From: Takakia lepidozioides
Lineage: Eukaryota; Plantae; Bryophyta
Length of the DNA stretch: 64,000 nucleotides
Assembly (NCBI GenBank): GCA_030704615.1
Contig: CM060731.1
Location: 8,556,001-8,620,000 of the forward strand
Reading direction: 5' to 3'
The position numbers and the translations under genes were made by a program. Position 1 is the stretch's first letter. Each line of letters begins with the position of its first letter. Below the pieces are notes generated by a model. That model saw nothing but the letters and a program-made list of their open reading frames with translations. It was not told the origin of the DNA and did not search any database. Positions 28,670 through 62,631 of this stretch are shown here, one piece after another.

Positions 28670-28985
28670 AGAGTGTCTACAAGTTTAATTAGGGATATTC
28701 CAGGGTTTCCAATGTATAGTAAGGTTTTTATACATTTAAGCTTTTACAAATTAAACTAAAAACAAGGAATTTAGGGCTTCATGATATTTTAGGATTTCTA
28801 CAATTTATTAGGAATACCTGTTACATTGCCGTTTACATAATAGGGTTTCAAAGAGTCTGAAAATTAAATTAGAGATATTTCAGGGTTTTTCAGTTCAATT
28901 AGGGTTTTATATATTTAAGTTTTATAAAAATAAAAAATAAAACAGGAAATTTACGGCTTCACGATATTTTAGGGTTTCAAAATTT
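28670..28985. repeat. AT-rich ~180-bp direct duplication inside the Helentron
   Basis: 28681-28795 is similar to 28861-28975, and both contain TTAGGG/TTTAGGG-like words. Confidence 0.6.
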
Positions 28986-29100
28986 TAAAATTCACTTCTA
29001 TCTATATGTTTATGGTACTTCAAGTTTATTTTTCAATACTTTTCCTTAGTCGGGCTGTGATTATGCCCTTCAACCAAATTCCCATTGTGTTGGATTTGGC

Positions 29101-32100
29101 TTGGAAGGAATTTGGTCATTGATGCTTCATAAAAAAAAATCTCCTAAATATAAAGTACCTAACAATATTCATCTAAATAATCCTATATATAATGTTCAAA
29201 AACTAAATGCACTAGAAGAAAGATTAATTGCACCATGTATGGCTTTTGCACAAATATATCAATTGAAAGGTTATGCTCAATATGGTATTCGTGGTAGCAT
29301 AATTAATGTTCCAGCAAATATTAATGATACACAAGCGGTTCTACCTCGCATGCCACATGATGATGCTACAATTGGATTACTTTTGAAACGTCGATTAGAA
29401 TATAAAAATCCATATTTATCAGGAACTGTACGTCCAAATTTTATCATGTTAGCTTTACATGATCTTCTAACTACTCCATTATATATGGAAGCTCATGTTA
29501 CTATTCGTCCAGAATGGTCTGGTTTATTTGCAATGTTTCGTCAAACAGAACAAAATAATCAAAAACATTGTCTTAATGAAGAAAGTTCTGAAGAAGTTAT
29601 CGAAAATACTCCAGATAGTTTTGAGGAAGTTACCGAAAATATTACTAGTGATACTTTGGTGAAAAATATTCTCACTTCGGAACAAATCCAAGTATTTCAA
29701 GATGATCTTTTGACGGTAGCTCCTAGTCAAGATTTCAAACCATTAGGTCTATTTCAAGATATTCATAGCGAAGAATTAAATTTTCCTAGCTTGTTTTTTG
29801 GACATCCTCGATCAAATTGTTCGGATTTATCTTATCAAGATATTGCACAGTGGGAATTATTACATAAAGACCATGATTTTGCACGACATATTCCGAATCT
29901 TTTTTTTAAAGCTATAAAAGTATTAATTCATGGTGTTACTTCATCTTCTTGGATTCGTATTCGTAAAGGTAAACTTCATGGTAGACAATTAAAGGCAGGT
30001 GATCTCTTTGAAAAACCAAATTTGGATAAGCTATTGCGCTCAGATCTAGGCTATAGAGATCTAGAACGATTATGAACATCGCCCGATTACTTGGCTCTTC
30101 TTCGAAAAGAAGATTTTGCAATGATTCGACAATTGGGACCCCCTACTTTTTTGTCACATTCACAAGTGCTGAAAGTAAATGGACACCACTATTAGAAACC
30201 ATTCATTCTCTCAACTATGAAAAATTAGAAATTCCGGATAATATACAAAACTTAGAAACTAAACACATTGCCGAGTTAGTCCGATCCGACCCCTTACATG
30301 TGTTCGATATTATGATCATCGAATGGGTGCTTTTAGAAAAAAAAATCATACCATTTTTGGACCCCTACGTGATTTTTTCTATGTTACGGAATTTCAAAGT
30401 AGAGTAGTGAACATGACCATGGAATGTTGTGGATAGCTAATGCACCCATTTATGGAATAGACCAAAATAAGATGATTGAAGATTTTGTGGATAAATATAT
30501 AACATCTGATAGTAATGTTCTTCCACCTAGTCTTCGTGAAGCTCAAATCCATCGACACAAACGGACATGTAAAAAAAAAATCAAGCTATATGTCGTTTTC
30601 ACTATCCATTGCCCCCAATGATTTGTACTACTATTTTGGAACCTTTCACTGAAGAATTAAACAGAAAGGATTTTAAACATTATACATTGATATCAACTCA
30701 AATATTTACTGAGTTAAGTAAAACGGATATGGGTATAGATATTTCATTTGATGACTTCCTTTCATTATTACGTATTGATAAAATAAAAAATAATATATAT
30801 ATATATGTGCATTGCGTATTAGATTGCAAAAACCTACTTTATTTTTAAAAAGAGCATGTAAAGATATCCGTACTAATGCATTTGGTATCCACGCTGGCCC
30901 ATTGTGGCAAGCTAATACTGATGCACAATATATTCTCGATCCTTATGCTGCAACAAGTTATTGTACTTCTTATTTAACTAAGATAGATAAAACTATTATT
31001 AATGAATTTCGTACAATAATAGAAAAATATAAATCAGAACAAGTTGATGCAAATGTTAGAATCCGTAAGATGGGAAATGTGCTCTTGAATGCCCAACAAA
31101 TGTCCGCTCAATTAGCTGCATACGTTGTCTTATCTATACCATTATATCATGCATCCAGAACTTTTAAATTTCTAAACACATCACCGCCTCAAGAACGGGC
31201 ATTTGTGCTAAAAGCTTATAAAGATTTACGACGACTCTCTCCCGAATCTACGGATATAAAGTGTGCATCTGCTATCGATAAATACATAGATCGCCCAACT
31301 ACATTAAATCATTTAAAATATATAGCAGATTATACAATGGAAAAAAATAATATAAAGCGTCGTAAAAAATCTCATATCGTTAGATATGTGCATTACAATG
31401 AGCATCGAGATTCTAAAAATTATTATCGAGAACAACTTCTACTTTTTCATCCATTCATAAAAAGTGAAGAATCTCAAAAAGACAACCGTAAACTTCGCAT
31501 GATGCGTATATGAATCATGAATCAACTATTTCATTAATACGTAATAAATTCATATACAAGTTTTCTATAGAAAATACTAATACATCATCTTGGAATATGT
31601 TAGAGACAAATGCTCACGAATTAGCCAAAATCAATGATACTAGTATATGGATGAATAACTTTCTTGATGCTGATGTTGATGCAGAAACCATTCCACAATC
31701 ATTAATAAGTAGTACTGGGATAGAACCATATGACATAGCTACTGAATTTCATTTGCGCCCTGAAATTGGTTTATCGACAATGCCTGATGCGAATATTTCT
31801 TCTGCGTCTGATAACATTATTTCCACAACAGAATTTTATGCACAAGTACGAAAACTTAATATAGAACAACACACAATTTTCGATGATTGTATGTATAGAA
31901 AATATTTGTTTCCCAATAAACCTTTGCACTTGTTTTTAACAGGGGGGGGCAGGAACCAGAAAAACATTTACTTTGTTGCTTATTATTCAAGGTTTATTGA
32001 GATTTTACAATAGACATCCACAATCTGACCCCCTTAAACAAAAAACAATTCTCATGGCATATACTGGAAAGGCTGCTTTCAAATATAGATGGAACAACAA

Positions 32101-33977
32101 TCCATTCAGAACTAAGCATACCTCTTAATTGCAAAGATTTGTCATCGCTAGGTTCTGAACGATTAGACACATTAGTAAAAAAAAATTAATGAACTACAAC
32201 TTATGGTATTAGATGAAGTATCTCTTGTAGGTAGTAGGATGTTTGCGTTTGCTGATCAACGATTGAGATCAATAAAACAAATTCATAATTCTTACTTTGG
32301 TAATATTGATGTTATTATCACTGGAGATTTCTACCAAACACCGCCAATACGAGATTCATGGGTTTTCAAAAAGAAAAATGAAGGTCTTGATGCTATAGTA
32401 CCCGGTTTTTGGCAAGATTGTATTAAATGTTACGAACTTAATCAAGTAATGCGTCAATTAGACAATGAATTCATTGCCATCTTGAATCGACTGCGAATTG
32501 CAACCGCAACTCAATTTGATATTGATACTATAAATCGACAATGTTGTCGTCCTGCTCCTAACAATCCAACATTTCCACATTTGTATCATACAAACAAATC
32601 TATGTTAGTTCATAATCACAAAGCATTTGAACAAACTAAAGGAAGTATATATATTTTTGAAGCTATTGATAAACATAATGATACGTGTCCATCCACTTTT
32701 AAGCTTTCACATAATGTAGCCAATACAACTGGCTTACATACAATCATTCGTGTAAAAGAAGAAATGTTGGTGGAGTTATGTGCAGGCAACTATGCAACAC
32801 ATGATGGTTTAGTAAACGGAGCAGACGGTATATTTAAACATACTTCAGTGTTAACAGATTCAACACCTTTAATATGGATACAATTTAATAATCCAAAATC
32901 TGGTGTTGCTACACGTGCAAAAAATATTCATTTATATAGCTCAACCATAAATAAGTTATGGACTCCAATTCAACCTATTACAAAAGAAATTCAAATAGGA
33001 TCCAATACATCACATATAATTACAAGAACACAATTTCCTATTCAATTAGCAGCTGCACGAACTATACATTGTTCACAAAGATTAACTTTAGACTATTTGC
33101 CGTTTGATCCAACAGGAGTACATAAACATGGTTTACGTTATACAGCTTTGTCTCGAATACGTAAAAAAGAAAATTTGTATCTCCTATCAAATTTACAATT
33201 ATCAAATTTTCATGTTGATAATGGTGTGGTTGAAGAAATGCAAAGATTGAAAACAACAGCAAAATGGGAGTTGATCATTCCAACTTTAACCATATATACA
33301 CAATCACATGTTCTTATACAACATTTAAATACTAGATCGTTATTATTACATAGAGAAGATGTATGTGCAAATCACAACTTACAAGCAGCTCATATTTTAT
33401 GTTTTAATGAAACACATTTTAATCCAAAAACTTCTGACATAAACTTATTCATAGATACCAAAAAATATTCGCATGTGGCTGTTCATGGTAGCCATGGTAC
33501 AATGCTATTATATGACAAAACAGTATCGTTAACATCGTATGAAATATTTTCATCTTCTGGTGCTGAATATATAATGGCTACTTCAACAAAAATACAAGAA
33601 GAGCTATCCACATTATTGTCATTTACAAATCTCCATCGCTTTCAATACCCACATTTTTATCTTCTTTACAAACAATTGTTGATAAGATGCCAAGTTTTTG
33701 CCCCACCATTATCATGGGTGATTTTAATATTGACATGCTAGAAAATAATTCATCAATGTCAAAGCAACTGTTACAATTTATGAAGACGATTAACATGACA
33801 CTTCAATTTATGCAAGCTACTACAATATATGGTTCACAATTGGATCACATTTGGACAAATACACCAAACCAACAATGCATATCTGGAGTTACAGAAGCAT
33901 ATTGGACAGATCACAAACCTACATATATAGCTTTCAAGTTGCCAAATCACGTTGTTAAATATCATCATTCACATTAG
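29101..33977 (+). mobile_element. Helentron/Helitron2-type RepHel: HUH Rep, PIF1 helicase and C-terminal AP endonuclease; frameshifted
   Basis: EERLIAP..FAQI...QYGIRGSIINVP; EELNFPSLF; MIRQLGP.TFFVTFTSAE.KW; EFQ.R..EHDHGMLW; QIHRHKRTC; FLTGGAGT(R)KT; LDEVSLV; GDFYQ.PP; RTQFPIQLAAARTIH.SQ. Then the endonuclease motifs HLNTRSL, CFNETH, IIMGDFNID, GSQLDHIW and WTDHKP. Confidence 0.92.
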
Positions 33978-35844: not shown

Positions 35845-37390
35845 CAAGACACTTTTGCTCTTGTCATCAATTTTCTCACGAATGATTGGGAGACAAACAT
35901 ATTACAGTGGGATTGTTTGAGGCTATTGATACAACGGGGCCAGTCTAGCAATCCAGCTTCGTTCTTTGCTTGAGAAGTACGGACTAACATATAAAATTAT
36001 TTGATTTGTGAAGGATGAAGGCACAAACCTGAGCACCATGGCAGTCGCCCTTAGGGAAGTGGTGTTATATGAGGCATTAAGGGCCAGACAGTACCATATG
36101 AGGGTGCTTGTTTTGATCATGCCATGTCAAAAGCATGTCAGTATGCTATAACAGACAAGAATGTGAGTCAGGATCTAGGCACTATGAGCATCAAAGTTGC
36201 ACAATCCGCGATACAATCATGTATCACTTGGCCAATGAAGTTAGGTAAAGGTTCAAAGGAGTGCACATATGTTGCATGGATTCCAACTTGAGGCCTCGGA
36301 AATTGAGCACTCCTGTGAAGACTCGTTTTGCATCAAAGGTTATCATGTTTCAGCAGACATTGGAGTTTAGGCCTGCAATCAATCTTTGCTATAGTAGGCT
36401 GTTGAAAGCATGGCAGGGTGGGCCCAAAATGAAAGTCACAGACAGTTTATTTTTTCATTTTGTATATATAGGACTCAATGAAGATATTAAGTTGGAATTT
36501 TTTATGGGTTACGAAGCAAAATCTAGACCATTGTTGAAGTTTCCAACATAATGAAACTTGAATCAGACAAATCTGACAAGATTTGAAAGCCATATAAGTC
36601 CATGAGTGCATGAATCTTGCGCAGTCACAAAGGGTGATATGCCCTTCATGGACTCATGGGGAAATGAATCCAACATCCATTGTAGATGCATTGATCTCCC
36701 TTGTTATATGAAAAATGGTTCAATGGTCAAAATTTCCTCCCCTACAAGTGTTGGACGTAATTAAATATTTACAGATTTGGTGAATGATCACCTTGATTTT
36801 GGACATGCAATCTTTATTATTTTTTATATCTTCTTTCACAATAAGATAAATTGAAAGCTTATGGAGTGAAACTTGCCTACAAAAATTAGATTCGAACCCA
36901 CCTATGAGTACTTGTAAATTTTCAATCTATGAATTGATGTCAATAAAGGGCGAGATTAATAAATAAACTTAGGGAGGTAGCATGATATCATATGTATGTA
37001 GTCTTCAAGGTTTCACAAATAGGTTTGTCTAAAAATACACTGTTCATGAAAATGGACTCGAGGACTCCAGATTCTACGGTTTTTGGCCCACCCTATCCTG
37101 CATTGCAAACTATAGCTTTGCAAAGCCACATTCTAACGACACAAATATGGGCTGTGGCAGAAGCGATTTCTACCATATTGTCTGTAGTTGTCTCTGCTCA
37201 TGTGTTGAACCAACGACGAAGTTACCGGTTGTTGAGTGATGCGCTGATCACCGCAAATTTAGATGAGTGTTCTGATGGTTGGTGAGCGCTTGGAGATGGA
37301 GGCTATAGTGGTAGCAGCCCCCCGCCTTAACTTCGCTACCAAGATTGTGCTTCATAATGCAAAAATGCGAGAGCAGGTGGTAAAGGTCTT
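35845..37390 (+). mobile_element. hAT transposase relic, central part (same family as 60338-62631), interrupted by a MITE
   Basis: DTFALVINF...VKDEGTNL...CF.HAMSKACQYA...RKLSTPVKTRFASKVIMFQQTLEF...CYSR//Q.IALQS.I...QIWAVA...MREQVVKV aligns colinearly with the 62631 ORF. Confidence 0.85.
36400..37107. mobile_element. ~700-bp non-autonomous TIR element (MITE-like) inserted in the hAT relic
   Basis: Inverted AGGGTGGGCC(C)AAAA at 36415-36429 and 37081-37094. The hAT reading frame (CYSR|QTIALQS) resumes after it. Confidence 0.65.
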
Positions 37391-37927: not shown

Positions 37928-39622
37928 TGTCATACATATCGCTACACAACTACATCACTGTCTAAAACCACACAACACATGTGCGCACCACATACTAGTA
38001 TACCATTAGTCCAGCCACTAGTCCAACCACTAGGCTGTCACTGTGCTGCCCACTATGGCAGTCGCTAGTCCACCACAATGATAAAGAAGAAGAATACAAG
38101 CACAAGCTCATGCGAGCTCACAAAGCTGAAGCATAAACTCATGGATATATAAACTCGTCACTCAAATACAAGTCAAGCCAAGTGCACCCCACGCCATGGG
38201 GAATCCACACTACGACGCCATAACTAGGCGCGGTGAGGCTCAACTCGCTCCATTGATCTGATAGTGACAGGTTGGCCCTGCCAAGGGCATTCATCAGCTG
38301 GGCATGACAATGGATTGCGAGACTCGAGGACGGGTCTGTTTTGGGAGATGGTACGGATTTTGCGCCACTTGCAGCTTCATCAAGCTGTATCGCCAGTATA
38401 CATCTTGGAGAATGTGCCACTGATGGGCGATTCTCGGGCCAGGGTGATGGCCAGTGTGCATCAAGTCCGGTCGTGGTTTGGGTTAGCAGTGCTGCTGGAT
38501 GCAGCTGCAGTGGGATCACGGGCTCATCGTCCACGGCTATGGTGGATTAACTTGATGCCACCCGCACTGCTCAAGCGTGCATTTGATGGGGTGCAGCGGC
38601 CAACACACCTCATAGTGGACAACATTTTGGACACAGGGAGGCAGTCTCAACGTGTGAGACACGATGACCGTTCGCCTTTGGCAGTGGTCAACAGGGTGGG
38701 TCAACCACGAGCAGCATTACCTACACTGCTCAGCTTCCCAGGATCCCATGCTTTTCGGGATGGTGGACCTGGCCTCTTGTGGGATGCTCAGTTGCAACAG
38801 TTAGTGGAGCCTAATGCCGACGAGCGAGAACGGGCTATGGGATTTTCCACTGGGACCACGGCGGTGCCTTCTCTTTCTGAGGCATCACGTCGTCAGGTGT
38901 TGGGGCAAGCAATGGATCTCAATTGCTTGACCTGGATTATCAGCTTGGCTATGGCTGAGCAACGTAGAGTGCGGAGTGCACTTTCCTTGACGGTCTCTCT
39001 GCCTACCGCAGATAAGCCTCCCCTACTTGCCGATAACCACTCCAGGGCCTAAATCTGCATTGACCCCTGGATTGACACTTGGGCCAATCACAAATGTCAA
39101 TATGTAAAAGCTAGCTATTTCATAACTAGTTTCACACTAGTGGTGAAATAACTTGACAGCTGTCGTGCATATATATCGCTACACAACTACATCGCTGTCC
39201 AGAATCACACAACACATGTACACACCACACACTAGTATACCACTAATCCAACCACTAAGCTGCCACTGTGCTGCCCACTATGGCAGTCACTAGTCCACCA
39301 CAATCGCCCCCCTAGCTGGTGCTTAGGTCCCTCTAAGTCCAGGTAGCCACAAGATGTGATAGTGACCATAGCCTCACTAAGTCCTCCACCACTATCCCTA
39401 CTACACCCAAACTCGATAGATAAAGAGGCCGGGTGCAATAGTTGCCCCATCGTTAGTCGCCGTCTTGCAACCTGTGAACTTGAGCCTGGGATCTCGTGTA
39501 TTGACTCCTATGAGCTTGGCCTCCCATGTCTTGTTAGCTGCATCTAGTCATGTCCACTGCCACTATCCCAAGCAATGTGGACACAACCAATCTCCATCAG
39601 GAACCTTCTCAAGAGTTGAGCA
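37928..39622 (-). mobile_element. Rearranged LTR-retrotransposon relic (LTR-like direct repeats, PBS, PPT, PHD-finger end)
   Basis: ~140-150-bp direct repeats 37928-38077 and 39161-39302 (TG...CA). On the minus strand the PPT AGGGGGGCGAT (39313-39303) abuts TG at 39302. PBS TGGCGTCGTAGTGTGGATTC at 38220-38201. ORF end STLEKVPDGDWLCPHCLG* at 39619-39563. Confidence 0.75.
38249..39052 (+). CDS. DNMT3-like DNA (cytosine-5)-methyltransferase catalytic domain, 5'-truncated, intronless
   Basis: IDLIVTGWPCQG.S (motif IV with catalytic PC), GLFWE..RIL, YILENV (motif VI), DAA.VGSRAHRPRLWWINL (motif VIII), ERERAMGF..GTT (IX) and RRQVLGQAMD (X). Motifs I-III are absent because of an upstream TGA at 38234. 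Confidence 0.88.
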   Translation, partial: SIDLIVTGWPCQGHSSAGHDNGLRDSRTGLFWEMVRILRHLQLHQAVSPVYILENVPLMGDSRARVMASVHQVRSWFGLAVLLDAAAVGSRAHRPRLWWINLMPPALLKRAFDGVQRPTHLIVDNILDTGRQSQRVRHDDRSPLAVVNRVGQPRAALPTLLSFPGSHAFRDGGPGLLWDAQLQQLVEPNADERERAMGFSTGTTAVPSLSEASRRQVLGQAMDLNCLTWIISLAMAEQRRVRSALSLTVSLPTADKPPLLADNHSRA

Positions 39623-39906: not shown

Positions 39907-41023
39907 GTTTGAACCAACGACCCCATGGGATTGGCACAAATCCTAACCATTGACATCTACGCCATAATCATTGTGATGTGGTTTGATAAGAATTTGTAAT
40001 GGATGAAACTGAAAATTTGTTGGGTTTTCATTTTGAAATGGGGGGGGAAAAAAAAAAAATGCTTGAGCAACCCATCGAGTCGATGAGTTCAAAACACTTA
40101 TTTTATATTGAAGGATGAGATTTATATGGATGGACATAAGTCACAAAAATTATAATAAGATAAGTTAAGAATAAGGTTGGTCAAGACAATGTCTCAAACT
40201 AGCTTGCCTCATTGCAATTATCTCAAATGATCTTTTGCAAATTAAAGTCTTAGAGAAACATCGCTCTACCAAATGTTTGGGTCTTACTGCTTCAACAATG
40301 AAGATAGAACTCACAATGGACGGTGATATATGTAACCTTCAAGCTCTTCGCTCATTTCTAGTCCTAGAAAAAACCTAAATATTTCCACCGAGAGTATAAA
40401 ATGAAATTGATAGTCACAACTGTTTAAAGCTCTAATGAATTCAAACTAAAGAAAATCATCGTGGCTAACATGTTGCTTACTATTTTTTCAAAATCTTGGT
40501 GACATATTTTTATGCACAAACAATTATTTTCTAGTACAAAAAAAGACTCATAGATCAGTCATAAAGATCTCATTTGGAAGAAGAAAAAATGTGTATTGTA
40601 GTATTAAATAATAGCATATTGTCATTATGAATCAACCATGTCATAACCAATTTCGGCAATACAATTTAACATTCATAATTTTCTTTAAATAGAGTGAGGA
40701 AAAAATGGAAGATGCCTCAAGCGTATTGTCCATGAAATTTGAAAAGACACTGGACTCATTTCCAATGATTACATGTGCATGCATAGAAAACTATAAAAGA
40801 AAGAGGCTCGTGAGCTATTAGATGGCTCATTTCTACATTGGAAGCAAACCCTCATAATTCCCACCAGAATGCTCTCTGATGGAGAAATTTCATATCTATG
40901 TCCAAGAGCCGTAATCCAATATAAGAGGTAAATTTGAAGAAGGCAGTAAAGTTGGTGGATCGAATAAATATAAGTTTGGCGAGTGAGGAAAGACTGTGAA
41001 GAGGTCTCAATTTTGTAGGAGAT

Positions 41024-44000
41024 ATGGACAATCCAGACTCACATCGAATCCGTACTATTCCATCATTGTCACAAAAAGATGGAATTCAAAATCAATATAA
41101 TGAAAGTAGTACGTCGGAATGGAGAAATGATGGAAGATCGTCTCAAAGTGTCAGAGAAGAATTAGAAGACCACCATGGCTCTACATATGGGGGAGAAGAA
41201 CAAATGAGTACTTCAGATTCTGAAATTAAAATTGTGGATAAACCAAGTTCGCAAAGAATCTCTACAGAAGGCAACATTCGGTACATGAGCATGAAAAACC
41301 ATCTTTTTGTTCTCTAATTCAAAATACCAATATGACAACTACATATCATTTTTTATTATTTCCATTGATGAGTGAAATTACACTATGTGAAGTGAAGTAT
41401 AACATTATAAGTCAAAGAATTTGATAGATATAATGTCAATAAATTAAACAGATATCAAATCAAGAAAATTACTGCAATATAAATACTTGATGGTAATCCA
41501 AGGTCATTCATTCATCTTGTGTATTTTTCTTTAAGAAAATAAAGAAATGAACAAAAGCCCTGAAACTCAAATTAAGGCTGGGAAAAAATAACCTCGGGAA
41601 AGTACAAAGGGGATTTGGGTTGCTTGAAGATGTTTTTTTTTTTTTTTAATTGTTATGTATTCAGATGTCAAACGAAGACAAATTTCTTACTTATTTTCAC
41701 AGTTCAACATTTGGATGTATATGTGTTGCAGCCTAAAAATGAAAGAAAATTCATATAGCATGTCTAGCAAAACATCCTATGCACGTTTTGCAAAGGCCAA
41801 ATTTGCGGTTGGAGCACATTGGAACAAAAAGGAATCCATAGAGAAGCTTATGGAATTCTCATCGGTAAATGTTTGAGAATTTGATGGACAAAATTAGTCA
41901 ACTTATCATCGTGGTAACGTAAGATCAGGAATTAATATATCAAAACACCGTTATTTATTATGAAACAACAAATCATCATTCTATTTTTTTTAAATTGTTA
42001 TTACGTGACAATCAAACAGTCTAAAATTAACTATTGTTTGAAGGAGCCAATCAAAGTTGGATTATTGAAGAGTGTAGGAGCGAAACCTATCGCTGCAATC
42101 GTATTTGCACGTAAATTTCAGCCATTGTCTATCACATACTTTTTTCTACACATGTGATTGTAATACAATAGAAATAGTGAATAAATTAATTATGTTCATT
42201 TCACATTGCCGGAATATTATTCAACCACAATGCTATCGTGTTTTAATGTAGGCTTCTGTAAATAGACCACATTCCAAAAGTAATAAAATGTAGGCATCAT
42301 TATAATTTTTCTCTCATAAAAAACCGCATTGAACACTTCTTAAATATTTTAAATTTGTGAGTAGCTTATGTGTAGCAAATTAACTAGGTACCATTGGATT
42401 TATTTTAAGAGACAGTGGCTAGTTTTAATGAATGTCAACTATCTGTCATATTTTGATACTTCTATTAGAGTTAAGTGGATCAAATTTAGAATTGATGCTA
42501 CTTTTAGAACCAAATGGTTGATAATTAGGATTGTCACTAACTCATGAGTCGTGTAAGTGATACTAATTTTACGTTACATATTGTGGATATTAGTTGTGGA
42601 TAGATCAAGAAGCAATGAATGCAAATAAAGTTACTTCCAGTGCCTCTGTCCCTGTTTCATTAAAAATATTTGAAAATAAAATAAAAATAAAACATTAGTC
42701 ATGTAATCTATTCAATTTGTTCAGCACCAAATTGTAAGAAAGACAGTTCAGTCCAAGGTCATGAATACAAATTTCAAAGTCTCTATGACATAAAGAGAGA
42801 GTCCCGGTGGATGAAACAGATGTGATGGCATACATGGGAACCATAGCTGGTTGTGGCAACAGACTGCACCACGCTTATCAAGTATTGTCAGCAGGAATCC
42901 GTCACTTGGACCTCCGCGATGAAATATACTGTCAATTATGCAAACAGACTTTCAACAACCCTGATAGGTACTTCGACGTGAAGCTTTATTATCCAATTGA
43001 TTTTATTTTATTTTATTTTTATTTTTTAAGAGGAAGGGGAGGTAGCCCTTCGAGCTTTATTGACGATTATTGTTGGGAAAAAAATTAAAACCCACATTTG
43101 CCCGAAGGCTGCCATAAGGCATAGCACACGGATGCCGTGTTGGTGATCCATGAGAGCAATGCACACTCACATGAAGTGACATGTCTAACAGTAGCTATAG
43201 AACTAGGGCAAAGAGCCTATTCTATCATGTGAGTAGAAATGACTTACAAGCATTGATCCCATGACACAGTGTATGCCTAAGGGCTAGTGTATGCTTAAAG
43301 ACTGAGTGAAAGTGTTTGCAAAAGGCACGGAGCACTGGCAGGTGTTGACGAGATAACTGCCAATCTATCTATCAAAGTCTAGGCGAGAATTGAATTCATT
43401 TTCAGTCCGAGTTTCATAAGGACGTAATTTTATAAATATCAGCTACATTTAAATGTTGATAGTCTACAAAGAGAAGTTGCTTAAATAAATGGGCTCTAGA
43501 TGAATCATAGACTGTCATCAAATAAAATAGTGTTAACAGTTTGCTCTTAATTCAATCCATTATTTTTGACATGTTTGACTAGTTATCGATGATGTTGACA
43601 TAGACAAGTTATCAAATAACCATACAAATAAAAGCATGGACTATACTTCTTATTGAAAAAAATTAAAGGATGTAAAACAATATTACTAAACTAATATGTA
43701 AATCTAATTGAAAAAATATTTGATTACTATGCAGAGTTTGAGGAAAACTTGTGTGGCTGCAATTCAGGGAGAGCAATGCGAAGGGATGGCAACTCATGAA
43801 GCTATGTTGTAGCAGCTTCTCTGCAAGAGATTTCTTGACTACTTTGAATTCTCACTTACAACAGGTTGTCTTTGAATCCAACAAGCTAAACCTTGCATGG
43901 ACCATACTATGAAAGAAGTCAAAACAAACTTGCACATGGATGAATGATACATAAGTTGAACTAATACGTTGACTTAACCCTCAATGGTCAACATAATCTT

Positions 44001-47000
44001 GACATATGATATTTTAAATATGACAAGAGAAAGTTAGATAACATTTGAAAGAATGTTCACCTTGTTGCAAACATGAAAAACTGTGAGATTTTTTGAAATG
44101 AGAAAATCATGGTCAGGTAGGGAGTGGAGAATTGAAGGGTTTCAAGGGGGAAACAAGTGCATTGGCTTGTTCATCGAGATTGCATCGCGTATTGAAAATT
44201 GGATCACGCTATTTCCTGCCTTCTCTCGATGAGATCCAAGCCATCGAGGTCTGTTCATTGTTTATTTTGCACCACCTACATTTTTTCTAGTTTAATATGT
44301 CATTATATAATATTTACTGATTAATCAATAATGTGGAAAAAAAAGTAGTGCTAATATTGCTAGAAATTCTTGATGTTTGTTACTATATCAGTTTGAGAAT
44401 TAAAGTGGTATAATGTAACACAGACATTCAGTTTTGCTTTTGAAACCCTTCAGTTTGCTATTGAAATGGGGATTTTGTATTTGGACGTGGATTCAAGAAT
44501 CTGCGCAAAAATATTCTTATTGTTCCAGTTTGTTGTGCATCTCATAGAATGAAACGTTGATACCAGCACAGATTTTTTTACCTGACGGCAATCACCAGGT
44601 CAAACGTTCAACAAAATTATATAAATAGGTGTAATTTATATAGAGAATTTTCACCACAACATTATAAAGACCCATATGAGTACGAAAACACAAATATTTA
44701 TTTCATTTTCTAATGTATTAAATGTAGAACGTTTAAAAAAAAAATTGATTACGTAATCTTCCATATTTTTTTGAAATTATAGAAAATATCGATACATTTA
44801 GATATCTAAGAGATGAACTTGAAATCTATGGACAATATCCTATCTAGATTAAAGTTGACCACAGTACAAAAATTGTGCATTTGCGATTCCCGACATAAGT
44901 TGGATCAGTTTTGATTAAAAAATTACATTATGTTTAATATAATATTTTGAAGTTTAATCTACGTGGAAAAAATAGACTTGATTTTGGGTGACTGATACAA
45001 TTATTTGTTTATGCTTAGTGATGGACCTTCCGCTCTAGCTTTTACAACTGATCAGATAGTGATAGGTGAAATTTTGCTATTAGAAGTTTTTGTTGGTATG
45101 GTGTATAAATTGATATGGAAAAGTGAGCAAGACAAAATACAAAAATATTTAATACTATAAATTAAGTTGTATTGGTAAAATACCAATAGTTCACAAATTT
45201 TACAATTAATAATTTAATTTTTGTGCACAAAGGTGTTGTCTTTGCACACCATGACCACCACGGAAGATGTAGCAACTCATATGGCACTACGACTTCATTT
45301 GCCGAATCCCAACCACTTCGGTGTCTTTCACACTATCGATGGAGGTAAAAATTTGTATGTACACATATTACTGGTCAAGTAAAATATATCAATGACATCT
45401 TATATCATTGTATTCTAGAATTATCAAACATGCACAAACAGACCGGTTGCTAGGGTACAAGATTGTATTATGAGGTGGTAATGTGTTCAAAGTCATGAAG
45501 TATATGTAAGTTAGATCTCATTCATTATAGCCAAACCAACTATAAGAGGGGTCATTGGGCCAACCAAATATCCAATATACGGGTACCTAATAAATAAAAT
45601 GTGAAGAGGGTGCCGATGCTGTAAATTATGTTGTCACTCGACCCCACAAGACTTCCGATGGGAGAGTGAACACTTTTATAACATCTAACATGTAGTTTGA
45701 ACCCACAACCATTGGTGAGGTGACTTGTGCCTTACCCTTGGGCTAAATATTTGGTTGATACCTTAAATTCGAATCCTTAGGATAGATTTTGGCATTTGTA
45801 CTATTGTCATGCTTATGATTGTTATATCCACCTTCCGAATGGAAGATGTGCCATAATAGCTTCACTTATGATGGAGTGGACAAAACCATGTAATTTTTGT
45901 GGTACTTATTTTGACGTGAATTATATGTTTTACAATAATCAATGAGAGTCTGAGTTTCTCAATCGAGATAAATTTAACTTTTCATTAAAACTATCAGATT
46001 TTTGAGCAAATAATACTAATGATCAATATGCTACGAAATAATAAATGTCAATCACAATCTCATAGCGATTTGTATATCTCTTACAAGAGATATAGATCTA
46101 ATATTAAAAGATTGTATGGTTAATTATGAAGCTCAATAATGGGTTCATAAGACTACCCCCTTTCGTTTGGAGGGTTAACACATTCTAATGGCCATAAACG
46201 GGGCAAGGGGGTTACCCATATCTCTCGCAAGGACTCGAAAGTCCACACATACCTGCACATTAAGTGATCGGTTAATCCGATAGTTGGGTTGGCTCTAATG
46301 GGTGACGTCCAACATACAATTATATGTGATTTGGAACCCATGACCACTTGTAAGGCGGCCTTGTGTTCTAACCATAGGGCCATCCGTTGGATGCTTGCAT
46401 AGTATATACATAGATATTGCAAAAGAGAGCGATGTCTCAAAGGACACATAAACAGAAAGAGAGAGTTGCACACTCTTGGAGCTAAGATAAGTACTAATGT
46501 TCAAACGAAACTCTATGATTGGTTTGATTAAACAACATCATCTATTTGATCGATTGTGTGTGGCACAGTTGATAAGCTTCTTGCAAAACATGCTTTTCTA
46601 ATTGATATCCAAGCTGGTTGGAATCCATTGTTGGCAATTCAAAAAGTTAAAGATTGGCGTTTAATATCGAAGTTCAATTTCCTTTGCAGAAAGAAACCTC
46701 CGCCGGATGAGGTAATTATTTGGATACTTTCAAATTATAATTCAAACTCATCTTAAATAAGAGAGTCAAAATCAACATTGTATTGTTTGTAAATTGGTTA
46801 TGATCAATGATCAATTCCCTGGTTCCATTTTGTGTATACTTCATTTTTTAGTTGGCTAGTGTTGAATTTGGAACCTAAAATAGTCTAAAAGACAAAACCG
46901 TAACAATAAGCTACAAGCTTGTAGCAAATTGCGTCTTCATGAATAGAATTACGGTGATATTTTATTGTCTATAATGGCTCATGACGTCCATTGGTCGGAC

Positions 47001-48283
47001 AATTACGTAAATTAAAACGTTGGCCGGTTCTCTTGGCCACACATCTGCTAGGAGGGCGACTACGAAACATAACTCTTGGTTTGGTCTTATACCAAACGAC
47101 CATATATACCCATCTGGTTTATATATGTATAACTAACCAGTGGACATTGTGTATGTGATATTGTTTAGTGAGTATTCGACCTTTGTTTCATCTCTAGTAG
47201 TATTGATGGGAAAACAGTACATTATAATGATGGTTAACAGTCATTTGGGGTGAAGTGACATCATAAGTTGCATATGCTTTAGCAAGAATCTTCATCCCCT
47301 TTATGATGGAAAGACAACCCTTTAGTTGATGTACATGCATGAATAATCGGGTCTAAATATTTATAGTGAATTTTTTTTGTTATAGTGTGCACGTGTAAAA
47401 TTATAAAACTCTTATGTATATCTTATCCCCAAAATGACTTCAATATTAGCTATGTATATATATGTATATATATAATCACCTCATGTATGATTAATGCACT
47501 TATAGTAAATTGCTGTCGCTTCTTTGAATTTGTGATCAGTTAGGTATCGTTGATGAGGCTTCGAGTAACCCCTTTGCGCATCAGTATGAAAAAGGTCGTC
47601 TTATCATCAAAAGAAAATTATTTCTCGATGGTCCTACTTCTACTAGCCAATCACATAAAGATGCAGCATTGACGTTTGATTACTCTCAGGTATACTCTGA
47701 TGTATCTAACACTAATATAATGAAAATTGGGATTATTTTTTATTAGGATTCTTGGTTAGAGGCAAATAAGAGATTATTAAAGAATTGAAAAATAATCAAT
47801 AAGAAATTAGAAATTTGTAGAATTGATATGAAGAGGGTTCAGAATATCTTAGTAGTGGCTTCACACAAAAATGTTAGCATCATCCAGTGGTTAGGGCACC
47901 CGGCACAAGACCGCCACCTTACGAGCGATCATGGGTTCAAACCATATAAGTGTATGTTAGATGTTACCTGTTATACATCCAGCCAACCCACCTGTAAATC
48001 GGGATGTTTTTGGATACCGTTTAATTTATGTGTGGGAACGTGGGAACCTAAGAACTTTCGAGCTTGAGTTCATGGATGGTTTGGCAACCACGTTGCATAG
48101 GATATTGCCATTAGAACGTGTTCACTTCCAACATTTTAAAAGCAACGCATTAGGATTGTAGCTAAGTGGTTTGACCATTTTGTTCGTCTTGTACGTTAGG
48201 TATGGGGTTCTTGTGTCATATAACTTAGAAAATAGATTCTTTTTCCCTCAAGAAAAAAATTTAGCTATTGTTTAAGTTTTTGT

Positions 48284-48320
<37 letters not shown>

Positions 48321-51300
48321 TTGTTCATTATAATATTATTTAATTAGTATGTTTCAAAATCAAGATTGGAGTCTAAATAGGTGTGGTAGGTTTGGAATGA
48401 TGTCTGCTCACGGCTTATGCTAATGGAATGAATATATATAAATTAAAGAGTTGGGAGTTTTATTAATGATTATTGAAGGGAAAAAAAATAGAACCCTTAC
48501 ATGCCCGAAGGCTACCATGAGGCAAATACTTTGTCAATCTCTCTTCAGTGTAAACTAGGGTAGCTTGTGCCGTTGGCCCAAGTGTCTAAGGTCATGTAAG
48601 CCCAAGTGCAATCTCCTATGCGTCCCCTAAAGCTCCAACTATGTCATATATATATGTGCGGGGAAATATTCAAATTTTATGAGTCTAACATGATGAAGTA
48701 ATTACTTAAATAACTCAATTGACGTAATCTACCTATGTTCTATTCGACCATAAACATAAAATATCCTAAATGAGTATTGATCTCAAATGATGTAAATTTG
48801 CAGGCAGTATATGAAATCATGTCAGGGTCTTATACAATCACAGAGATGGATGCACTAATGTTGGGAGCATTGCGCTTGCGCGTTGACCTTGGAACCAATG
48901 AAGGGATTATCCCTCAGAAAATTACAACGTACTGAAATTTCTTTAATAGTCACAACATTTAACATTGATCATTTAGTATATTTAATCTTGCTTGAATGTG
49001 GATATATACACACCCGTAGTTGTAATTAACATCACAAAAGTCTACAAATCTTGTATCCAGCTTGACTAACAATACATAGGCAAATGTACTATTATTGTCC
49101 CAGTAATGAAATACATCCAAATGTCCACTATGGGTACCGGCTAAGGAGTTCCAAGTCCTTTAGTGGAGGGTTGGGCAACCTTGTTGTCTCAATTATGATC
49201 ATTTAGAAGGTGTCCACCAGCTTGAATGTCCACATGAGGAATGTGAGTGTCCACCTTTCCAAAGGAAGTAGCCCTTCGTTGTGAAGTGACACCATAAGTT
49301 ATGCTTGCTTCGGCAAAAGTTTTCTTCCTTCCAAATATTCAGCCTAGCTAGCTTGCCACATTTCTCTTTGTTTTGAGTCTTCAAATTTGTAAGTACCATG
49401 ACCCTTGAAAATTGCATTTTTAAAGAAACTTCCTATTTCAAAAACAAATCAAGGAGTTTCGTTGGTTTACCTCTTAATCAACACATGGATTCTCTAATCT
49501 TGAAAATCAAAATATCATAGTCTAAAACATTGTAAATGAGGGATGCAGTTTAAAATTTGTCAAAGATGACATTTTTTTTTTATATACATCGTCATCTCAA
49601 ACCTTGTCCATTTTTATCTCAAACACTTTTACTAGTACTCCTAAATGATTTTCCTTACAACTAACCATTGGCAGTTGCTTTTGGTTTGGGAGCAGAAAAT
49701 TAGATATTCTTAAATATGGACCGAAAGAGTATGTGAGAGGAAACGAGGATGCTTGGAGAAATGAACTTTCTAAAATTATTGCAACTCTTCCAATACAACC
49801 CAATGTGATGATTTGTAAGAGTGACTACGTGGATTTCTTGAAGAGTCGATGCCCTCTTTATCAATCTTCTTGGTTCTATGTGAAGGTGCTGGATGTAGAA
49901 CCACATTTACTCTCCAATTTCAATTTATCTATAAAACAATTGTTCTTCATAACTATCAATATTTTATTCATTAGGGATATTTTATTTATTTTTCTCTCAA
50001 GAATAATAATTTACAAACCTGTCCAATAATCAAACATTTTAATTGTTTGCAGCAGAAACTAGATCTGCAACTACCAGCCGACATGTTTGTCGCTGTTAAT
50101 GGAACAGGTGTCCATTTTGCTACTTTGAAAACAAAGGTGGGAGGAACTCACATGGTACTATTGCAATGACCATATATATAATCAGTAAAAAAATTCATAT
50201 CCATTCAAAGAAGATGGAGATTAAACAACATATCGCAAGTACATATGTGCCTTGCTTAACACAAATCAGAGAATTACTAGCTTAGAACGTGCACTTAACT
50301 CTCCATTATGCTCATCGGGTTGAACAAATTTTGTAATTGCTAGGGCGTAACAATTCTCGTAAAGCACTGCCAAAAAACTTTCTTTGTGTTTATGGTGCTA
50401 TTAAAAAGCAGAATTCATCCCGGTGCATTCCACCTGGCGGAATGCACCCCATCAGCTCATTCCAGTCCATTCAAAATGCAGAATGCACTGGACATTTTTT
50501 TTTAAACAAAAATTGTGGTAGTGCTTTACGCAAGGTAATGCCCTGGTGTCGGGCATTCCCGGATTTGCGGGCCTTCCCCTGGGGGCCTATACGTATAAAC
50601 ATGGATCCTCGGGGTTAGCAAAGAATTCCTGTTGGTTGTAGGCAGTCTGGATAGTTCCAATTCCCTTGGTTGTTTCCCGACTCATGACTGAGATGCTAAA
50701 TATAGGCTTTGGTTGGTAGATATTACATATGTTTTATACCCGTCGGGTCACATTATGTCAAAATTTCGTAAAATTTTGGTTAAAAATAAACGTAGGTTAT
50801 GGATGATACCAACATATCAAATTGCTAGCTAGCATCCGAGTGTGCATCTGATTATTAACCGTCCGTTCTGGGTACTATTGACATATCAAATAGGTGATTG
50901 GTCCATGTTATACGCATTCCGTTTATTTTGGGCAGACCATGGCCGAATATTACATTGGATACTGATTTTATTTATTTCTCCAATCAGATTCAATATGCCC
51001 ATCGGTTATTATTAATTCATTTTGGAAAACCGATGGGTCATTTTTTTAATACTGGTTGAGACCCGACCTATTAAAACCATGTCCAATATCCGCCCAACAT
51101 TGGTTATTATTTATTATGTATACGTTTATAGGTGTCAGTGGAGGTTCCACAAATAGCCCATTTGGTTTCGATTAACACACTCACATGCACCCTCAGTTTG
51201 AGTGGGCAATTATGGTTAATTGCGGCCCTCTCTATGTGACCCCTTGGGTTTGTAGCGAGTCCCAAAACTCCCCTACATTTCCCACCGCGATCTGCTAGAG

Positions 51301-53002
51301 CCCATAATAAGTCGTACACCACACCCACTTAAATATTCCCCTATTGTAAGACCCCTCACGCCACTTGAAGTCCCACAAACAGCATAATTGAGGGTCATTG
51401 CTTGTTTGAGGGCCTATGTGCTCAAGGGTCCCTCGGCCCCTACGAGTTCCCAATGGTTACCATTGTCATAATACCGCATGATGTTGTTGTCCAATCCTTC
51501 AACAATATTCCGTCAACCATTCGTTATTTGATAGAAAATGTGTTGAGTAGTAGGCTATGTAAATCCATTGCAATCTTATTTGTGCAAATCTTATTTTACT
51601 TCAACATAATGTCAAAGTATCATTTCCCTTGAATTATTATAATTACTTTTTTCTTAGTGCAAGCTTCATCTTCTTGAAAGTTTTAGGGGCTTTGTGATGG
51701 ATGAGCAACGGTAGTGGACTCAAGCAGGAACCAATACTATATATGCGTTATACAGAGATTTGCAGTTGGGGCTACTCAAATTGGATATTCTCCATCATCA
51801 GTGGAAACATGTACTTCATCTCTCTTTTCATAATTTAGAAGTAGCTAGATTTCTTGTTCTATAATGACTCCAGATGCAAATGTCAACATTCATATATTCT
51901 AGAATCAAAATCATACTAGTGTACTAACATACTAGTTCCAAATTTTGACATTAAAATTCGAGGAGGGCCTCTGTTAGAGTTCCATCAGCATGTTGATCAA
52001 TACATGTTAGCATATATCTCAATCACAAAAAACGCGAAAAGAGTTGATAAAAGATATTGTTGTAATTATAGGTATTTTTGTAGATGTCCTTATATAGAGA
52101 CTACTAAAATCAGTAATTAAATGTAATTGACAACATAGGACATTCAACCAAGACCATCGGCTCATCACTGGACAGGTGTGTAGTACCTAATAGCTACCAT
52201 GCTATAATTCAATTAAAATAAATTATATTTCTGATTGCAAAATAGATATAAATGATGGTGTTGGCATTCCATCCAGACTGTAGCACCATTATGTTTTAAA
52301 GTGGACATCTTCTAAGGGTTATAACTTGCAATGACACAAAAGTCCATAAATACCCGTAGAACCCAGTGACCTATTTTTATAAGTGACCTATTTTTATAGC
52401 TGATGTTCGCTACAATGGGTAACAATATCCAATATACGCTTAGGTGGTTTTAAACCCACAGCCATTTATCAACAAAAGAGGGATCAACTCCGGGGTCTAG
52501 TTTAGATACACCACAATATGAAGTGCATGCAATAGATTGATAATTACATATGACACCTCCCAAAGGCAGCATAAATTATGGTGTCTCTCGACCCCAGAGG
52601 GCTACTGCCTTTTGGTGTGACGGTGGACACCTTTCAGACACCAATTGGTGGATTGTGCCCATTACCACTAGGCTATAACTTGCTTGTTGACCTAATTGTG
52701 CCATAAACATTGTCTGCCACGGATGCTGATGCTACATATATAGACACACACACACACACACATCCTAATTTCAATTGCATAAACTTAATTAAATATATGA
52801 CAAAGTCATTATTCATAAATGGGGATAAACTTACATATGGTCGTATTAACAATTCATGTGGTGTTATGTCAATCATAGCAACATGAGCTTTACATTATTC
52901 GGGTTCAAATGCAATATGATTCAAAAACATGTATTTCTTTTAGTGCAGGGTATGGAAATTGCGCAGGTCATTGAAATGTTTGTGAATCAAATGCAAATTT
53001 AA
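41024..53002 (+). CDS. MyTH4-FERM domain protein without a motor domain, 16 exons, ~620 aa (N-terminus may extend upstream)
   Basis: Exons 41024-41280, 41732-41864, 42044-42110, 42820-42967, 43768-43864, 44117-44248, 44548-44598, 45233-45344, 46569-46711, 47540-47689, 48804-48928, 49696-49885, 50053-50136, 51728-51810, 52139-52175 and 52949-53002. All introns are GT-AG with matching phases, giving 1863 nt with no internal stop. MyTH4: LRDEIYCQLCKQT.NNP, GWQLM.LC..SF, G.R.FLPS.DEI.A. FERM: IF.PDG, LIIKRKLF, DYSQA...I.SG.Y, PLY.S.WF.VK, VAVN..GVHF, I.SWG, G.EI...IE.FV. Confidence 0.85.
45655..45765 (-). mobile_element. Short copy of a tRNA-like SINE family (intronic)
   Basis: ...AGGGCACAAG...GGGTTCAAACTACATGTTAGATGTTA is shared with the copies at 46155-46400 and 47872-48130. 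Confidence 0.45.
46155..46400 (-). mobile_element. tRNA-like SINE family copy (intronic)
   Basis: TGGTTAG (A-box-like)...CACAAGGCCGCCTTAC...CATGGGTTCCAAATC (B-box-like)...GCCATTAGAATGTGTTAAC, homologous to 47872-48130. Confidence 0.55.
47872..48130 (+). mobile_element. tRNA-like SINE family copy (intronic)
   Basis: CAGTGGTTAG A-box-like and GGTTCAAACC B-box-like motifs at tRNA-like spacing, followed by a body shared with 46155-46400. Confidence 0.55.
50341..50545. mobile_element. ~205-bp MITE-like palindromic element (intronic)
   Basis: Imperfect terminal inverted repeats AGGGC...CGTAAAGCACTGCCA / TGGTAGTGCTTTACG...GCCCT, plus an internal hairpin GGTGCATTCC...GGAATGCACC. Confidence 0.5.
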
Positions 53003-59605: not shown

Positions 59606-62600
59606 CAGTGTTGGGCGGTTCTTGCCTTTGTGAAGGAACCTTCGGTTCCGGTTTCCACAAATTTTTGAAGAGACGGTTCCGGGTCCGGATCCGGTTATTT
59701 TTTATTAGGCGGTTCCGGTCCGGTTCAGGTTCTGACTTTTTAACATGGGGGCGGTTCCGGTTACCGGTTAGTTGCTGGAAAAAAAACGCCGGTTCCCGGT
59801 TAGGTTCCGGTTCTTTTTTAAAAATATATTAAATTCTTTTAATTTTTTATTCTTCTAGAAAATTAGATGAACTAATCTGATTGGTTCATACTGAGAATTT
59901 TCAACTAAAACCAGGGAATTTATTAGTAAAACAGAAGTAAATAAACTTATATGTTTTTTGTGATTGTCTTTTATGGTATATATAACTAGTTATATACGCA
60001 TGGTCTCCATTAAAAACGGAAAACCAGAGATTTTATAAGTTGTTGTATGGTGTAGCAAAGAACAACTAAAACAGACTAACTACATAAGGATCTTAATTCA
60101 AAATACAAAACAAATTAAACATGTGTAATTCTATGGTTACCTTTTATGGTGCAGCAAAAGCACAACTAAAAAAAACTACATAAATTTGTGTTTTATGGAT
60201 GATGCTTTGTCAATATAGCATATAACAAACTAAGTACACGGGATGTCACTGAAATTTTCAATAAAAATGACAAATAAAAACTCCAATCAAAGGAGTATAG
60301 TGTAATATGTTGAACAATTATTTGTCTCTAAGACAAATCAGTCTACCTCAAAGAGGTTTGCCTCTGCAATCAAGTCCTCATTCTCATCTAAGATGACTTC
60401 TTCCCTATCCAAAAACTCTTTCATGGAAGTACTAAAGCAACCAACTCTAGCATCATTTGGCCAATTCTTGACTACACTCACAAGCATATCAAGGTTTTCA
60501 ATATTTAACCTGCACCGTCTCAAGTTTGTTATGACACCTGCAATACTAAAAACCCTCTCAGCTTCAATCTGAGATCCAACTATGCCCAAAATTAGCCGTG
60601 CCAAAAATCCCACATACGGAAAGAGAGACTCGTGTTCTTTCCACCATTTCAAAGGAGCCACGCACTCACCTTCATTTATCTTCGTCCTTCTGAAATGTGA
60701 TAGTTGTTCTCTCACCACTGTCAATGTCATCATTGTGGTCATGCACACCAAATAAGGACATCTCGTCCATTGTGGCAGTGGGCTGTGATTGGGCCGAAGT
60801 ATCCGGATGTAAGACCTTGAAACACTTTACCAAAAGAGGCTCTAACACCATACTATCATATTGGGACACAATATGCAAAGCACGCTCTTTGCCCACATAT
60901 TGTGATACCAATGACAACCCCTTGTAACGTGGGTCAAGCATAAGTGCGAGCATATTGTGAGCTTTGCGCGATTGAAACCCTTCCAAAAAGAAAGAAATGG
61001 TTCCAAGACATATACCACCTCTCGAGCCATCCGCCATTCCAACAATGTCAACTCTGTTGAGAAATCCCCCATGCAATGATCCACAGTTGCAGCCCCCCAG
61101 CACTACTTCCTCGCATGCGAATTGTTGTGGCAATGGCTGCATTAAGAGCATCGGACAACAGCCAAAATCCCCCAGATTGATTCATAATGCACTCATGAAC
61201 CACAGGCCCTAGAACTGTAGAAATTGATTGGGCAATGGCCCACACTTGTGGACTTGGTATGCGAGATTGCAGTGCCAATGAGGTTTGCCTAGAGTAACAA
61301 GTGATTATGGCTTGCCTAAACTCCAAAGTCTCTTGGAAGAGGATCACCTTGGAAGCAAACCGTGTCTTCACCGGAGTCTTCAGTTTGCGGGGATGAATGC
61401 CGCTGTCCACACATGCCTTTGCCCATTCTTGTCTCCCTTTGCCACTTTTTTTGGTCCAAGTAATGGTTTTTTGCAACTCTGATTGGGCATTTTTTATAGA
61501 AACCGATCTCATATCTGCGCATACTTTTGCATCATTTGTTGCATACTGGCAACACTTGGACATTGCATGCCCAAAACAGCTACCCACAAATGGAGAATCC
61601 AACCCCAAACACGCACATGAGACCACCGAATTCAAAGCATTGGTCAAAGTGGCCAAGTTACCTCCCTCATCTTTGACGTAAGCAATAATGCGAGTATTGA
61701 GGTCATACTTCACAAGAAGATTGTTGACTTGATGTGCCATGGCAGCCCCAGATGTGTCAGGTGTCTCAAACATGCCAAGAGTCACATGACATTGCTCCCA
61801 CTGTTCATTAATAAAGTGCGCTATGATGACAAAAGTGTCAGTTCCCCCTCTTGACATCCACAAATCAAAACTCACGGAGCAAGTAGCACAACTTTGAAGA
61901 GATGGGGACATGTAGCGCTCTTTCGTCTTCTCTGCCAAGATTGGAATGGCCTCATTCACAAATGTCCGTCGAGAAGGGAAAACAATCCGAGGATTTTGCC
62001 TCAACACCATCCTTCTTAGCCAAGGGGATTCTACCAAAGACAGTGGAACCAACTCCTTTGCAATGAATAAGACTAAATCCTCATTGAACTGCTTCTGTTG
62101 ATCATCATTTTGGTTGTATGGAGTGGGGCTCCTAAAAAAAGAAGCTATGTTTCCAGGAGTGGGGCCGGGCCTCTTTTTGGCTGGCCTACGGGCCTTCTCA
62201 GGTCCAAGATTTTCCCTCTCAATCCACCTACGCAAAACAATGTCATGTTCTTGATCCACATGCTTTCGAAGGGCAGAGATACCATTGGTTTTATTATAGG
62301 TCACAATGCCCTTCTTGCTTTCAGGAGTGACACCAACAGGATGACATAGAACACACCTCATTTGTTGTGGATTTGTTATGTCCACTGGAGCAGAGTCTTT
62401 TGTTGCATAGAATGCCCATGTCGAAGCAGTGCGATTGTGGGGTTTCCAAAAATCCCGTTGTTTGTCAAGGATTGGGAGCTGCGCCTCCACATCCAACACC
62501 GTGTGTGATGGCGAAACTGTGGAAGATGACATTGCAGCCGAGGCTTGATGAGCTGATGTAAATGAGGCTTCATGATGAGCATCCTCCGCAACATGGCACT

Positions 62601-62631
62601 CCACCAAAGCTCTCTCATTATCAACATTCAT
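59606..62631 (-). mobile_element. hAT DNA transposon with near-complete BED-finger transposase (62631-60338, ~3 frameshifts) and 3' TIR
   Basis: BED finger (W.FY...RC.LC...ALRKHV..EH), SFDLW, KDEG.N, CFGH and TRF motifs, and dimerisation domain PLKWWK...SQIEAERVFS.AG. TIR CAGTGTTGGGCGGTT at 59606 with CGGTTCCGGT subterminal repeats. The 5' TIR was not found. Confidence 0.92.

Follow-up and report, generated by a model that had tools for sequence, protein, structure and literature searches.

A predicted motor-less MyTH4-FERM gene of the moss Takakia lepidozioides and its stand-alone streptophyte family

KCBP has been treated as the MyTH4-FERM protein of plants, the tandem being found otherwise in myosins outside the plant kingdom; its MyTH4 domain binds microtubules and its FERM domain binds actin (PMC4574192). 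In moss KCBP, the F3 lobe of FERM is required for cargo (10.1101/629733), and in myosin X (Myo10), MyTH4 binds tubulin tails while F3 binds receptor tails (PMC3155308). According to reviews, the myosins of land plants belong to classes VIII and XI only. Here we describe a gene of Takakia lepidozioides located at positions 41024-53002 of a 64-kb window (64,000 nt of contig CM060731.1, assembly GCA_030704615.1, positions 8,556,001 to 8,620,000), to which all coordinates below refer. Judged from its sequence, the gene looks functional and belongs to a streptophyte family in which MyTH4-FERM proteins stand alone, with Marchantia Mp4g21760 as the type; this family identity and the lack of a motor we regard as practically certain. 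The best overall explanation, which we consider reasonably probable, is that of a conserved motor-less family whose members serve as static adaptors between membrane and cytoskeleton, perhaps in flagellated cells.

The gene model comprises 16 exons on the plus strand, which join in phase to a coding sequence of 1860 nt, i.e., 619 amino acids (aa) plus a TAA codon, with zero internal stops. All 15 introns are of the GT-AG type and 170 to 1591 nt long, and the GC content is 41% in exons versus 34% in introns. As a chance control for the open frame, 20,000 sets of intron pieces of the same lengths were drawn, none of which was stop-free. The predicted protein features an acidic, disordered N-terminus followed by MyTH4 and a three-lobed FERM domain. 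Pfam searches with single exons gave matches in the expected order, with MyTH4 profile positions 2-31, 33-64, and 76-105 in exons 4, 5, and 6, respectively, and with RA_2 (F1) in exon 8, FERM_M in exon 11, and IRS-PTB (F3) in exon 14, each of the latter being weak alone. The exons are as follows.

41024..41280, plus strand: exon 1, aa 1-86, Ser/Glu/Asp-rich N-terminus, disordered as judged by composition; start codon provisional
41732..41864, plus strand: exon 2, aa 86-130, pre-MyTH4 segment; its 3' intron is common to Myo15 and KCBP
42044..42110, plus strand: exon 3, aa 131-153, N-terminal part of MyTH4 according to orthologue alignment
42820..42967, plus strand: exon 4, aa 153-202, MyTH4 core with LRDEIYCQ motif (PF00784, E=4e-9)
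43768..43864, plus strand: exon 5, aa 202-234, MyTH4 (PF00784, E=2e-5); one codon short of orthologues at a conserved Pro-Ser site
44117..44248, plus strand: exon 6, aa 235-278, MyTH4 end with invariant Arg and Glu 8 residues apart (PF00784, E=0.004); acceptor backed by a splice junction in the environmental contig L002
44548..44598, plus strand: exon 7, aa 279-295, start of FERM F1; 51 nt, likewise in Marchantia and Selaginella
45233..45344, plus strand: exon 8, aa 296-333, FERM F1 (PF21989 RA_2, E=0.009)
46569..46711, plus strand: exon 9, aa 333-380, F1 and beginning of an F1 insert of ~50 aa
47540..47689, plus strand: exon 10, aa 381-430, remaining insert, last F1 strand, and F2 start
48804..48928, plus strand: exon 11, aa 431-472, FERM F2 (PF00373, E=0.011)
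49696..49885, plus strand: exon 12, aa 472-535, F2/F3 boundary; 190 nt, likewise in Marchantia and Selaginella
50056..50136, plus strand: exon 13, aa 536-562, FERM F3; tandem acceptor with alternative start at 50053, giving 81 or 84 nt (84 in orthologues)
51728..51810, plus strand: exon 14, aa 563-590, FERM F3 (PF02174, weak); 17-18 of 27 residues identical with orthologues
52139..52175, plus strand: exon 15, aa 590-602, FERM F3; 37 nt, likewise in orthologues
52949..53002, plus strand: exon 16, aa 603-619 and TAA, terminal helix of F3 and stop, the latter aligning with the Marchantia, Calypogeia, Ceratopteris, and Selaginella stops

The F3 exons are among the best conserved in comparison with the orthologues. 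A candidate intron of 43 nt within exon 9 was rejected, since the frame would shift. Thirteen of the 15 introns match those of both Marchantia and Selaginella in position and phase, an RNA-independent validation of the splice model; when the alignment was enlarged, the position of one Marchantia intron shifted, resulting in 12 matches with Marchantia and 13 with Selaginella. Intron 9 is private to the Takakia gene. The original prediction had claimed a hidden but intact gene of 16 exons ending right after F3. Its intactness was borne out by the open 619-aa frame, the ordered Pfam matches, and the shared introns, and its end by the alignment of the stop with those of the orthologues, whereas "hidden" is an overstatement because orthologues are already annotated in NCBI, UniRef, and RefSeq.

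These orthologues were found by database queries with single exons, or with orthologues under their own identifiers; the frame check, the alignments, the intron map, and the trees were based on the joined model. Exon 4 gave 43 matches among 1.84 billion representatives, and the protein P0012, which matched seven exons in order, is Marchantia Mp4g21760 (MARPO_0090s0045). The other members are Riccia sorocarpa R1sor_014862 and R1sor_027348, one R. fluitans gene, Calypogeia CAM6089862, Selaginella SELMODRAFT_414494, Ceratopteris KP509_04G017100 (a gene of 107 kb), and Chara CBR_g11025 (a truncated model). The named hosts are thus liverworts, a lycophyte, a fern, and Chara. R1sor_027348 (P0047) is a divergent second member in one liverwort, which suggests that the two R. 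sorocarpa genes form an old paralogue pair. Environmental members were also recovered. Among them, L019 resembles liverwort sequences, while L021, a full gene rich in GC, has several family introns and may be alga-like. L002 (1-1551) is a partly spliced contig, joined at junctions 2/3, 3/4, and 6/7; its N-terminus is long and Gln-rich, exon 5 is skipped (leading to a premature stop), and intron 7 is retained. The top match outside the family was P0049 (Logan), a motor-less protein of WW-WW-MyTH4-FERM architecture. No seed-plant member was among the matches of the word-index searches, which score only 8000 candidates, so that absences are soft.

The Takakia protein shares 32-39% identity with the family and the same architecture and stop position, although it is more compact and fast-evolving, with a shorter N-terminus. 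In Marchantia, Calypogeia, Ceratopteris, and Selaginella, the models terminate with the same F3 helix as the Takakia protein; those of Riccia have ragged 3' ends. Across the family, the N-termini are 95-690 aa long, mostly acidic, and disorder-prone. In 6 of 8 members, the F1 insert has a net basic charge over its first 35 residues; the idea of a talin-like basic F1 loop was dropped, the charge of the insert being too variable. The Selaginella gene is labeled "unconventional myosin-VIIa" or "myosin-I heavy chain" in RefSeq, and further labels in the family are "hypothetical" and, in PANTHER, "Myosin VII, XV". These names are automatic and wrong about the motor.

Queries for a kinesin motor and for a myosin head, the latter with a positive control, found no match in the 64-kb window or in L021, nor in the surroundings of the Marchantia gene (27 kb) and of the Selaginella gene (19 kb). 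Pfam scans of the orthologues detected no motor, no IQ motif or head remnant was present in any N-terminus of the family, and no PH domain was found by Pfam in Takakia exons 1-3 or in the orthologues. The analysis shows a family without motor, IQ, PH, or SH3 domain, lacking the head and IQ neck of the MyTH4-FERM myosins (classes VII, X, XV, XXII, and XXV), in agreement with the predicted lack of a motor. The genes neighboring the Marchantia and Selaginella members are unrelated (histone H2A, a tetratricopeptide repeat gene, a mitochondrial ribosomal protein, a dehydrogenase, an aspartyl protease, and LpxB).

The 5' end of the Takakia model is provisional, with an acceptor (TTTTGTAG) 5 nt upstream of the ATG. 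Of the two upstream exons proposed earlier, 40693-40927 is not open in the required frame and was rejected as a coding exon, while for ~40270-40330 the donor at 40331 joined to the strong acceptor leads to a TGA. The provisional start, the acceptor ahead of it, and the lack of covering RNA would fit a longer gene of which the model covers just the 3' part, a motor being encoded on either side of it. This reading is extremely improbable in view of the motor-free 64 kb, the complete orthologue models without motor, the conserved stop position, and an opposite-strand gene 420 nt upstream of the Selaginella gene; a downstream motor was rejected.

For phylogenetic analysis, a tree of 41 cassettes and 539 columns was calculated under LG+C20, with partial cassettes, near-duplicates, and MyTH4-only proteins excluded. 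It was built without PLEKHH, Myo10 and Myo22 were not knowingly included, and KCBP was represented by three angiosperm sequences, which had been retrieved with one short motif and then checked by their kinesin motifs. The family, including Chara, formed one clade (100/99), in which L002 is sister to the Takakia gene (100/99), and KCBP formed a separate clade (100/100); the tree did not settle the order of the backbone. Grouping the Takakia gene with KCBP was rejected by the approximately unbiased (AU) test (p=2.6e-5). With an identity of only 23%, the gene is therefore not a recent truncated duplicate of KCBP, an outcome named beforehand as one that would refute the original prediction. Such a duplicate, or horizontal transfer from an animal or protist, might be suspected from the patchy range and from the fact that the highest similarity outside the family is to non-plant proteins. 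Both are very unlikely, since the introns of the family are conserved from Chara to ferns and include positions known from Myo7 together with others known from Myo15, a combination better explained by old vertical descent than by copying of either.

The differences from KCBP/ZWICHEL, a kinesin-14, extend to the architecture. In KCBP the cassette is N-terminal and followed by a coiled coil, the kinesin motor, and a calmodulin-binding site; its F3 sequence is different and its F1 loop is short. What the two share, besides being plant MyTH4-FERM tandems, are three ancestral introns: 3 of 8 cassette introns of an Arabidopsis-type KCBP coincide exactly with those of the family (p=1.5e-4), and one more is a near match. 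The overlap is larger with the C-terminal cassettes (MF2) of myosins VII and XV, amounting to 6 of 11 introns for fish Myo7a and 7 of 16 for Lottia Myo15, neither of which was reached in 100,000 random draws; preferred insertion sites are not considered in the random model, and the KCBP figures come from a single gene. The N-terminal cassette (MF1) of Myo7a shares none of its 11 introns with the family. Altogether, 9 of the 14 Takakia cassette introns sit exactly at Myo7a or Myo15 MF2 positions. The shared introns show homology between the family cassette and the C-terminal, MF2-type cassettes of myosins VII and XV, and the nine found in Takakia argue for an ancient module, inherited probably vertically from a gene that was already rich in introns before plants and animals diverged. 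The earlier statement that the C-terminal lobe looks more like myosin tails was supported, and the intron pattern likewise lies nearer to these cassettes.

How the cassette came to stand alone can be answered in several ways. A sister relationship of the family and the KCBP tail by ancient duplication in the green lineage, with a free cassette as donor to kinesin-14 or with the family as an early motor-less offshoot of proto-KCBP, is in line with the shared introns, with the presence of both proteins in the same lineage, and with the AU test, in which the grouping of family and KCBP was not rejected (p=0.25). The three KCBP-shared introns are, however, ancestral rather than a shared novelty because all of them also occur in Myo15; moreover, the sequence identity is low, and the free tree, with angiosperm KCBPs, leaves the two apart. 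We consider this origin unlikely. Slightly better placed, if still rather unlikely, is a headless remnant of a MyTH4-FERM myosin that was still present in early green plants. It would explain why the best matches outside the family are myosin VII MF2 cassettes along with the one WW-MyTH4-FERM protein, why six introns common to Myo7a or Myo15 MF2 are missing from the KCBP gene mapped, and why the cassette occupies the C-terminus, like its counterpart in those myosins; a grouping with Myo7 MF2 also survives the AU test (p=0.14). Against it speak the N-termini, which are free of IQ motifs and head remnants, the position of the family, which is nested in no myosin clade, and surveys that list no such green-lineage myosin and favor late, independent fusions of cassette and myosin (PMC3942036, PMC5583752). 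The suggestion that the gene preserves the tail of a myosin class otherwise lost was therefore not established: the tree fails to separate myosin-tail, KCBP-tail, and free-standing origins, and motor-less MyTH4-FERM proteins exist outside plants.

The predicted structure of the Marchantia cassette (predicted local distance difference test of 84.7, predicted template modeling score of 0.83) consists of MyTH4, an F1 lobe whose insert is disordered, F2, and an F3 lobe of seven strands ending in a helix. Its best structural matches are the cassettes of myosins VII and X at near full length (Z 24-30, 438-472 residues aligned, root mean square deviation of 3.2-8.0), whereas FERM-only proteins reach Z values of at most 20.3; the alignment used for folding contained myosin rows, and the model leans toward myosins accordingly. 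Myosins VIIa/VIIb and XV (MF2), Dictyostelium Myo7, and myosin X thus resemble the family in the fold from end to end, in the C-terminal position of the cassette, and in F3 motifs. Unlike the family, these myosins have a head, IQ, SH3, or PH domains, or a second cassette; identity to Myo7 MF2 is ~25%, and the F1 insert of ~50-90 aa is peculiar to the family. Proteins of the PLEKHH/MAX-1 type, motor-less MyTH4-FERM proteins of animals with tandem PH domains ahead of the cassette, also appeared among the structural matches. They and P0049 have in common with the family a cassette without motor, presumably acting as an adaptor, and differ by their PH or WW domains.

Without a motor, the protein would act as a static adaptor. 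The F3 lobe, which is similar to phosphotyrosine-binding (PTB) domains, may attach to acidic lipids or to the cytoplasmic tails of membrane proteins, as its counterparts do in Myo7, Myo10, and KCBP, and MyTH4 and/or FERM might contact microtubules or actin, by which a cytoskeletal array would be anchored to the membrane. By analogy with these proteins, an adaptor role is quite probable. The setting could be flagellated cells, e.g., with the spline or basal apparatus held to membranes in spermatids, for which the chances are about even; a role in sperm or flagellated cells we put, tentatively, at slightly below that. This link is drawn from the range of the family and from low thallus values of Mp4g21760. 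Six ciliated genera have family members, and every named host presumably has flagellated sperm, in keeping with the earlier suggestion of a protein kept in a flagellated-sperm lineage. In far-red-induced thalli of Marchantia, the values were below 1 (units presumed to be transcripts per million), with two isoforms swapping in a swi3 line; the gene is listed in one differential expression table, and its transcripts are very low yet detectable in whole thalli without visible gametangiophores.

Several observations weigh against the adaptor reading or its flagellar setting. No antheridial or sperm expression data were found for the family, and no annotated protein of Physcomitrium, Ceratodon, or Sphagnum matched among the 8000 candidates scored, despite the flagellated sperm of these mosses. 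Two small RNA-like runs of the same species compared with 41000-46800 matched intron repeats only, which is not evidence of silence. With regard to microtubules, the Arg and Glu at the end of MyTH4 are invariant in the family and compare with the R1682-E1690 bridge of Myo10. The center of the Myo10 tubulin patch, K1647/K1650 in the register as we take it to be, maps to neutral or acidic residues, and the net charge of MyTH4 varies from -4 to +13 across the family. Microtubule binding is not assured for these reasons, tubulin binding of the Myo10 type is doubtful from the sequences, and for the adaptor of the original prediction microtubule binding was not established, the Myo10 patch being kept only in part; nor was a role in sperm. 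A general adaptor at the cortex of the gametophyte or of dividing cells, not flagellar and with other causes for its loss in seed plants, would agree with the thallus transcripts, the missing annotated moss members, and the activity of the KCBP cassette in vegetative cells, but not with the very low thallus level and a range that so far matches ciliated lineages; we judge it not very likely. A fuller account may be entertained as a speculative possibility. In it, seedless streptophytes would retain a second MyTH4-FERM protein whose ancestor was a free cassette of early eukaryotes, a module of the type that was fused to myosins and kinesin-14 later on; the protein would anchor the microtubule skeleton of spermatids to membranes, and seed plants would have lost it along with their flagella.

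With a dynein heavy-chain fragment, leucine-rich repeat (LRR) receptor-like frames, and transposons, the remainder of the window fits a flagellated land plant. The following features were noted.

1044-1331, minus strand: apparent anthranilate synthase beta fragment, by eye
2436-2951, plus strand: axonemal-type dynein heavy chain fragment (Pfam AAA_6, E=4.5e-17), apparently intronless and degenerate, beside LINE-like sequence
5082-8061, minus strand: LRR receptor-like protein in three split frames
15942-17043, plus strand: gamma-glutamylcyclotransferase-like gene, by eye
18025-20397, minus strand: Mpv17/PMP22-like gene, by eye
26687-33977, plus strand: Helitron-like element with RPA-like frames, DUF6570, PIF1 helicase, and several broken frames
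37928-39622: GC-rich element just upstream of the MyTH4-FERM gene, with a C-5 DNA methylase frame at 38264-39052 (PF00145, E=1.8e-10)
43052-43121, 48455-48524, 45690-45722, 46280-46396, and 47915-47947: short dispersed intron repeats, SINE- or MITE-like, which recur in contigs of the RNA runs
60338-62631, minus strand: hAT transposase relic (dimerisation domain, E=1.8e-12), with a related fragment near 36261-37285

The domains, motor-less cassettes in general, and the orthologues in databases are already known. In the literature searched, which excludes most subscription journals, no paper was found that names the orthologues or a second plant MyTH4-FERM family, nor any functional study of the family, in keeping with its description as uncharacterised. 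A second MyTH4-FERM family conserved from Chara to ferns corrects the view of KCBP as the only such protein of plants, and places the cassette, in intron-rich form, before the plant-animal split. For the last eukaryotic ancestor, this is relevant to the choice between a MyTH4-FERM myosin and a free cassette (PMC3942036, PMC5583752), as it is to the source of the tail of the KCBP chimera, and with Mp4g21760 the function of the family becomes directly testable in Marchantia.

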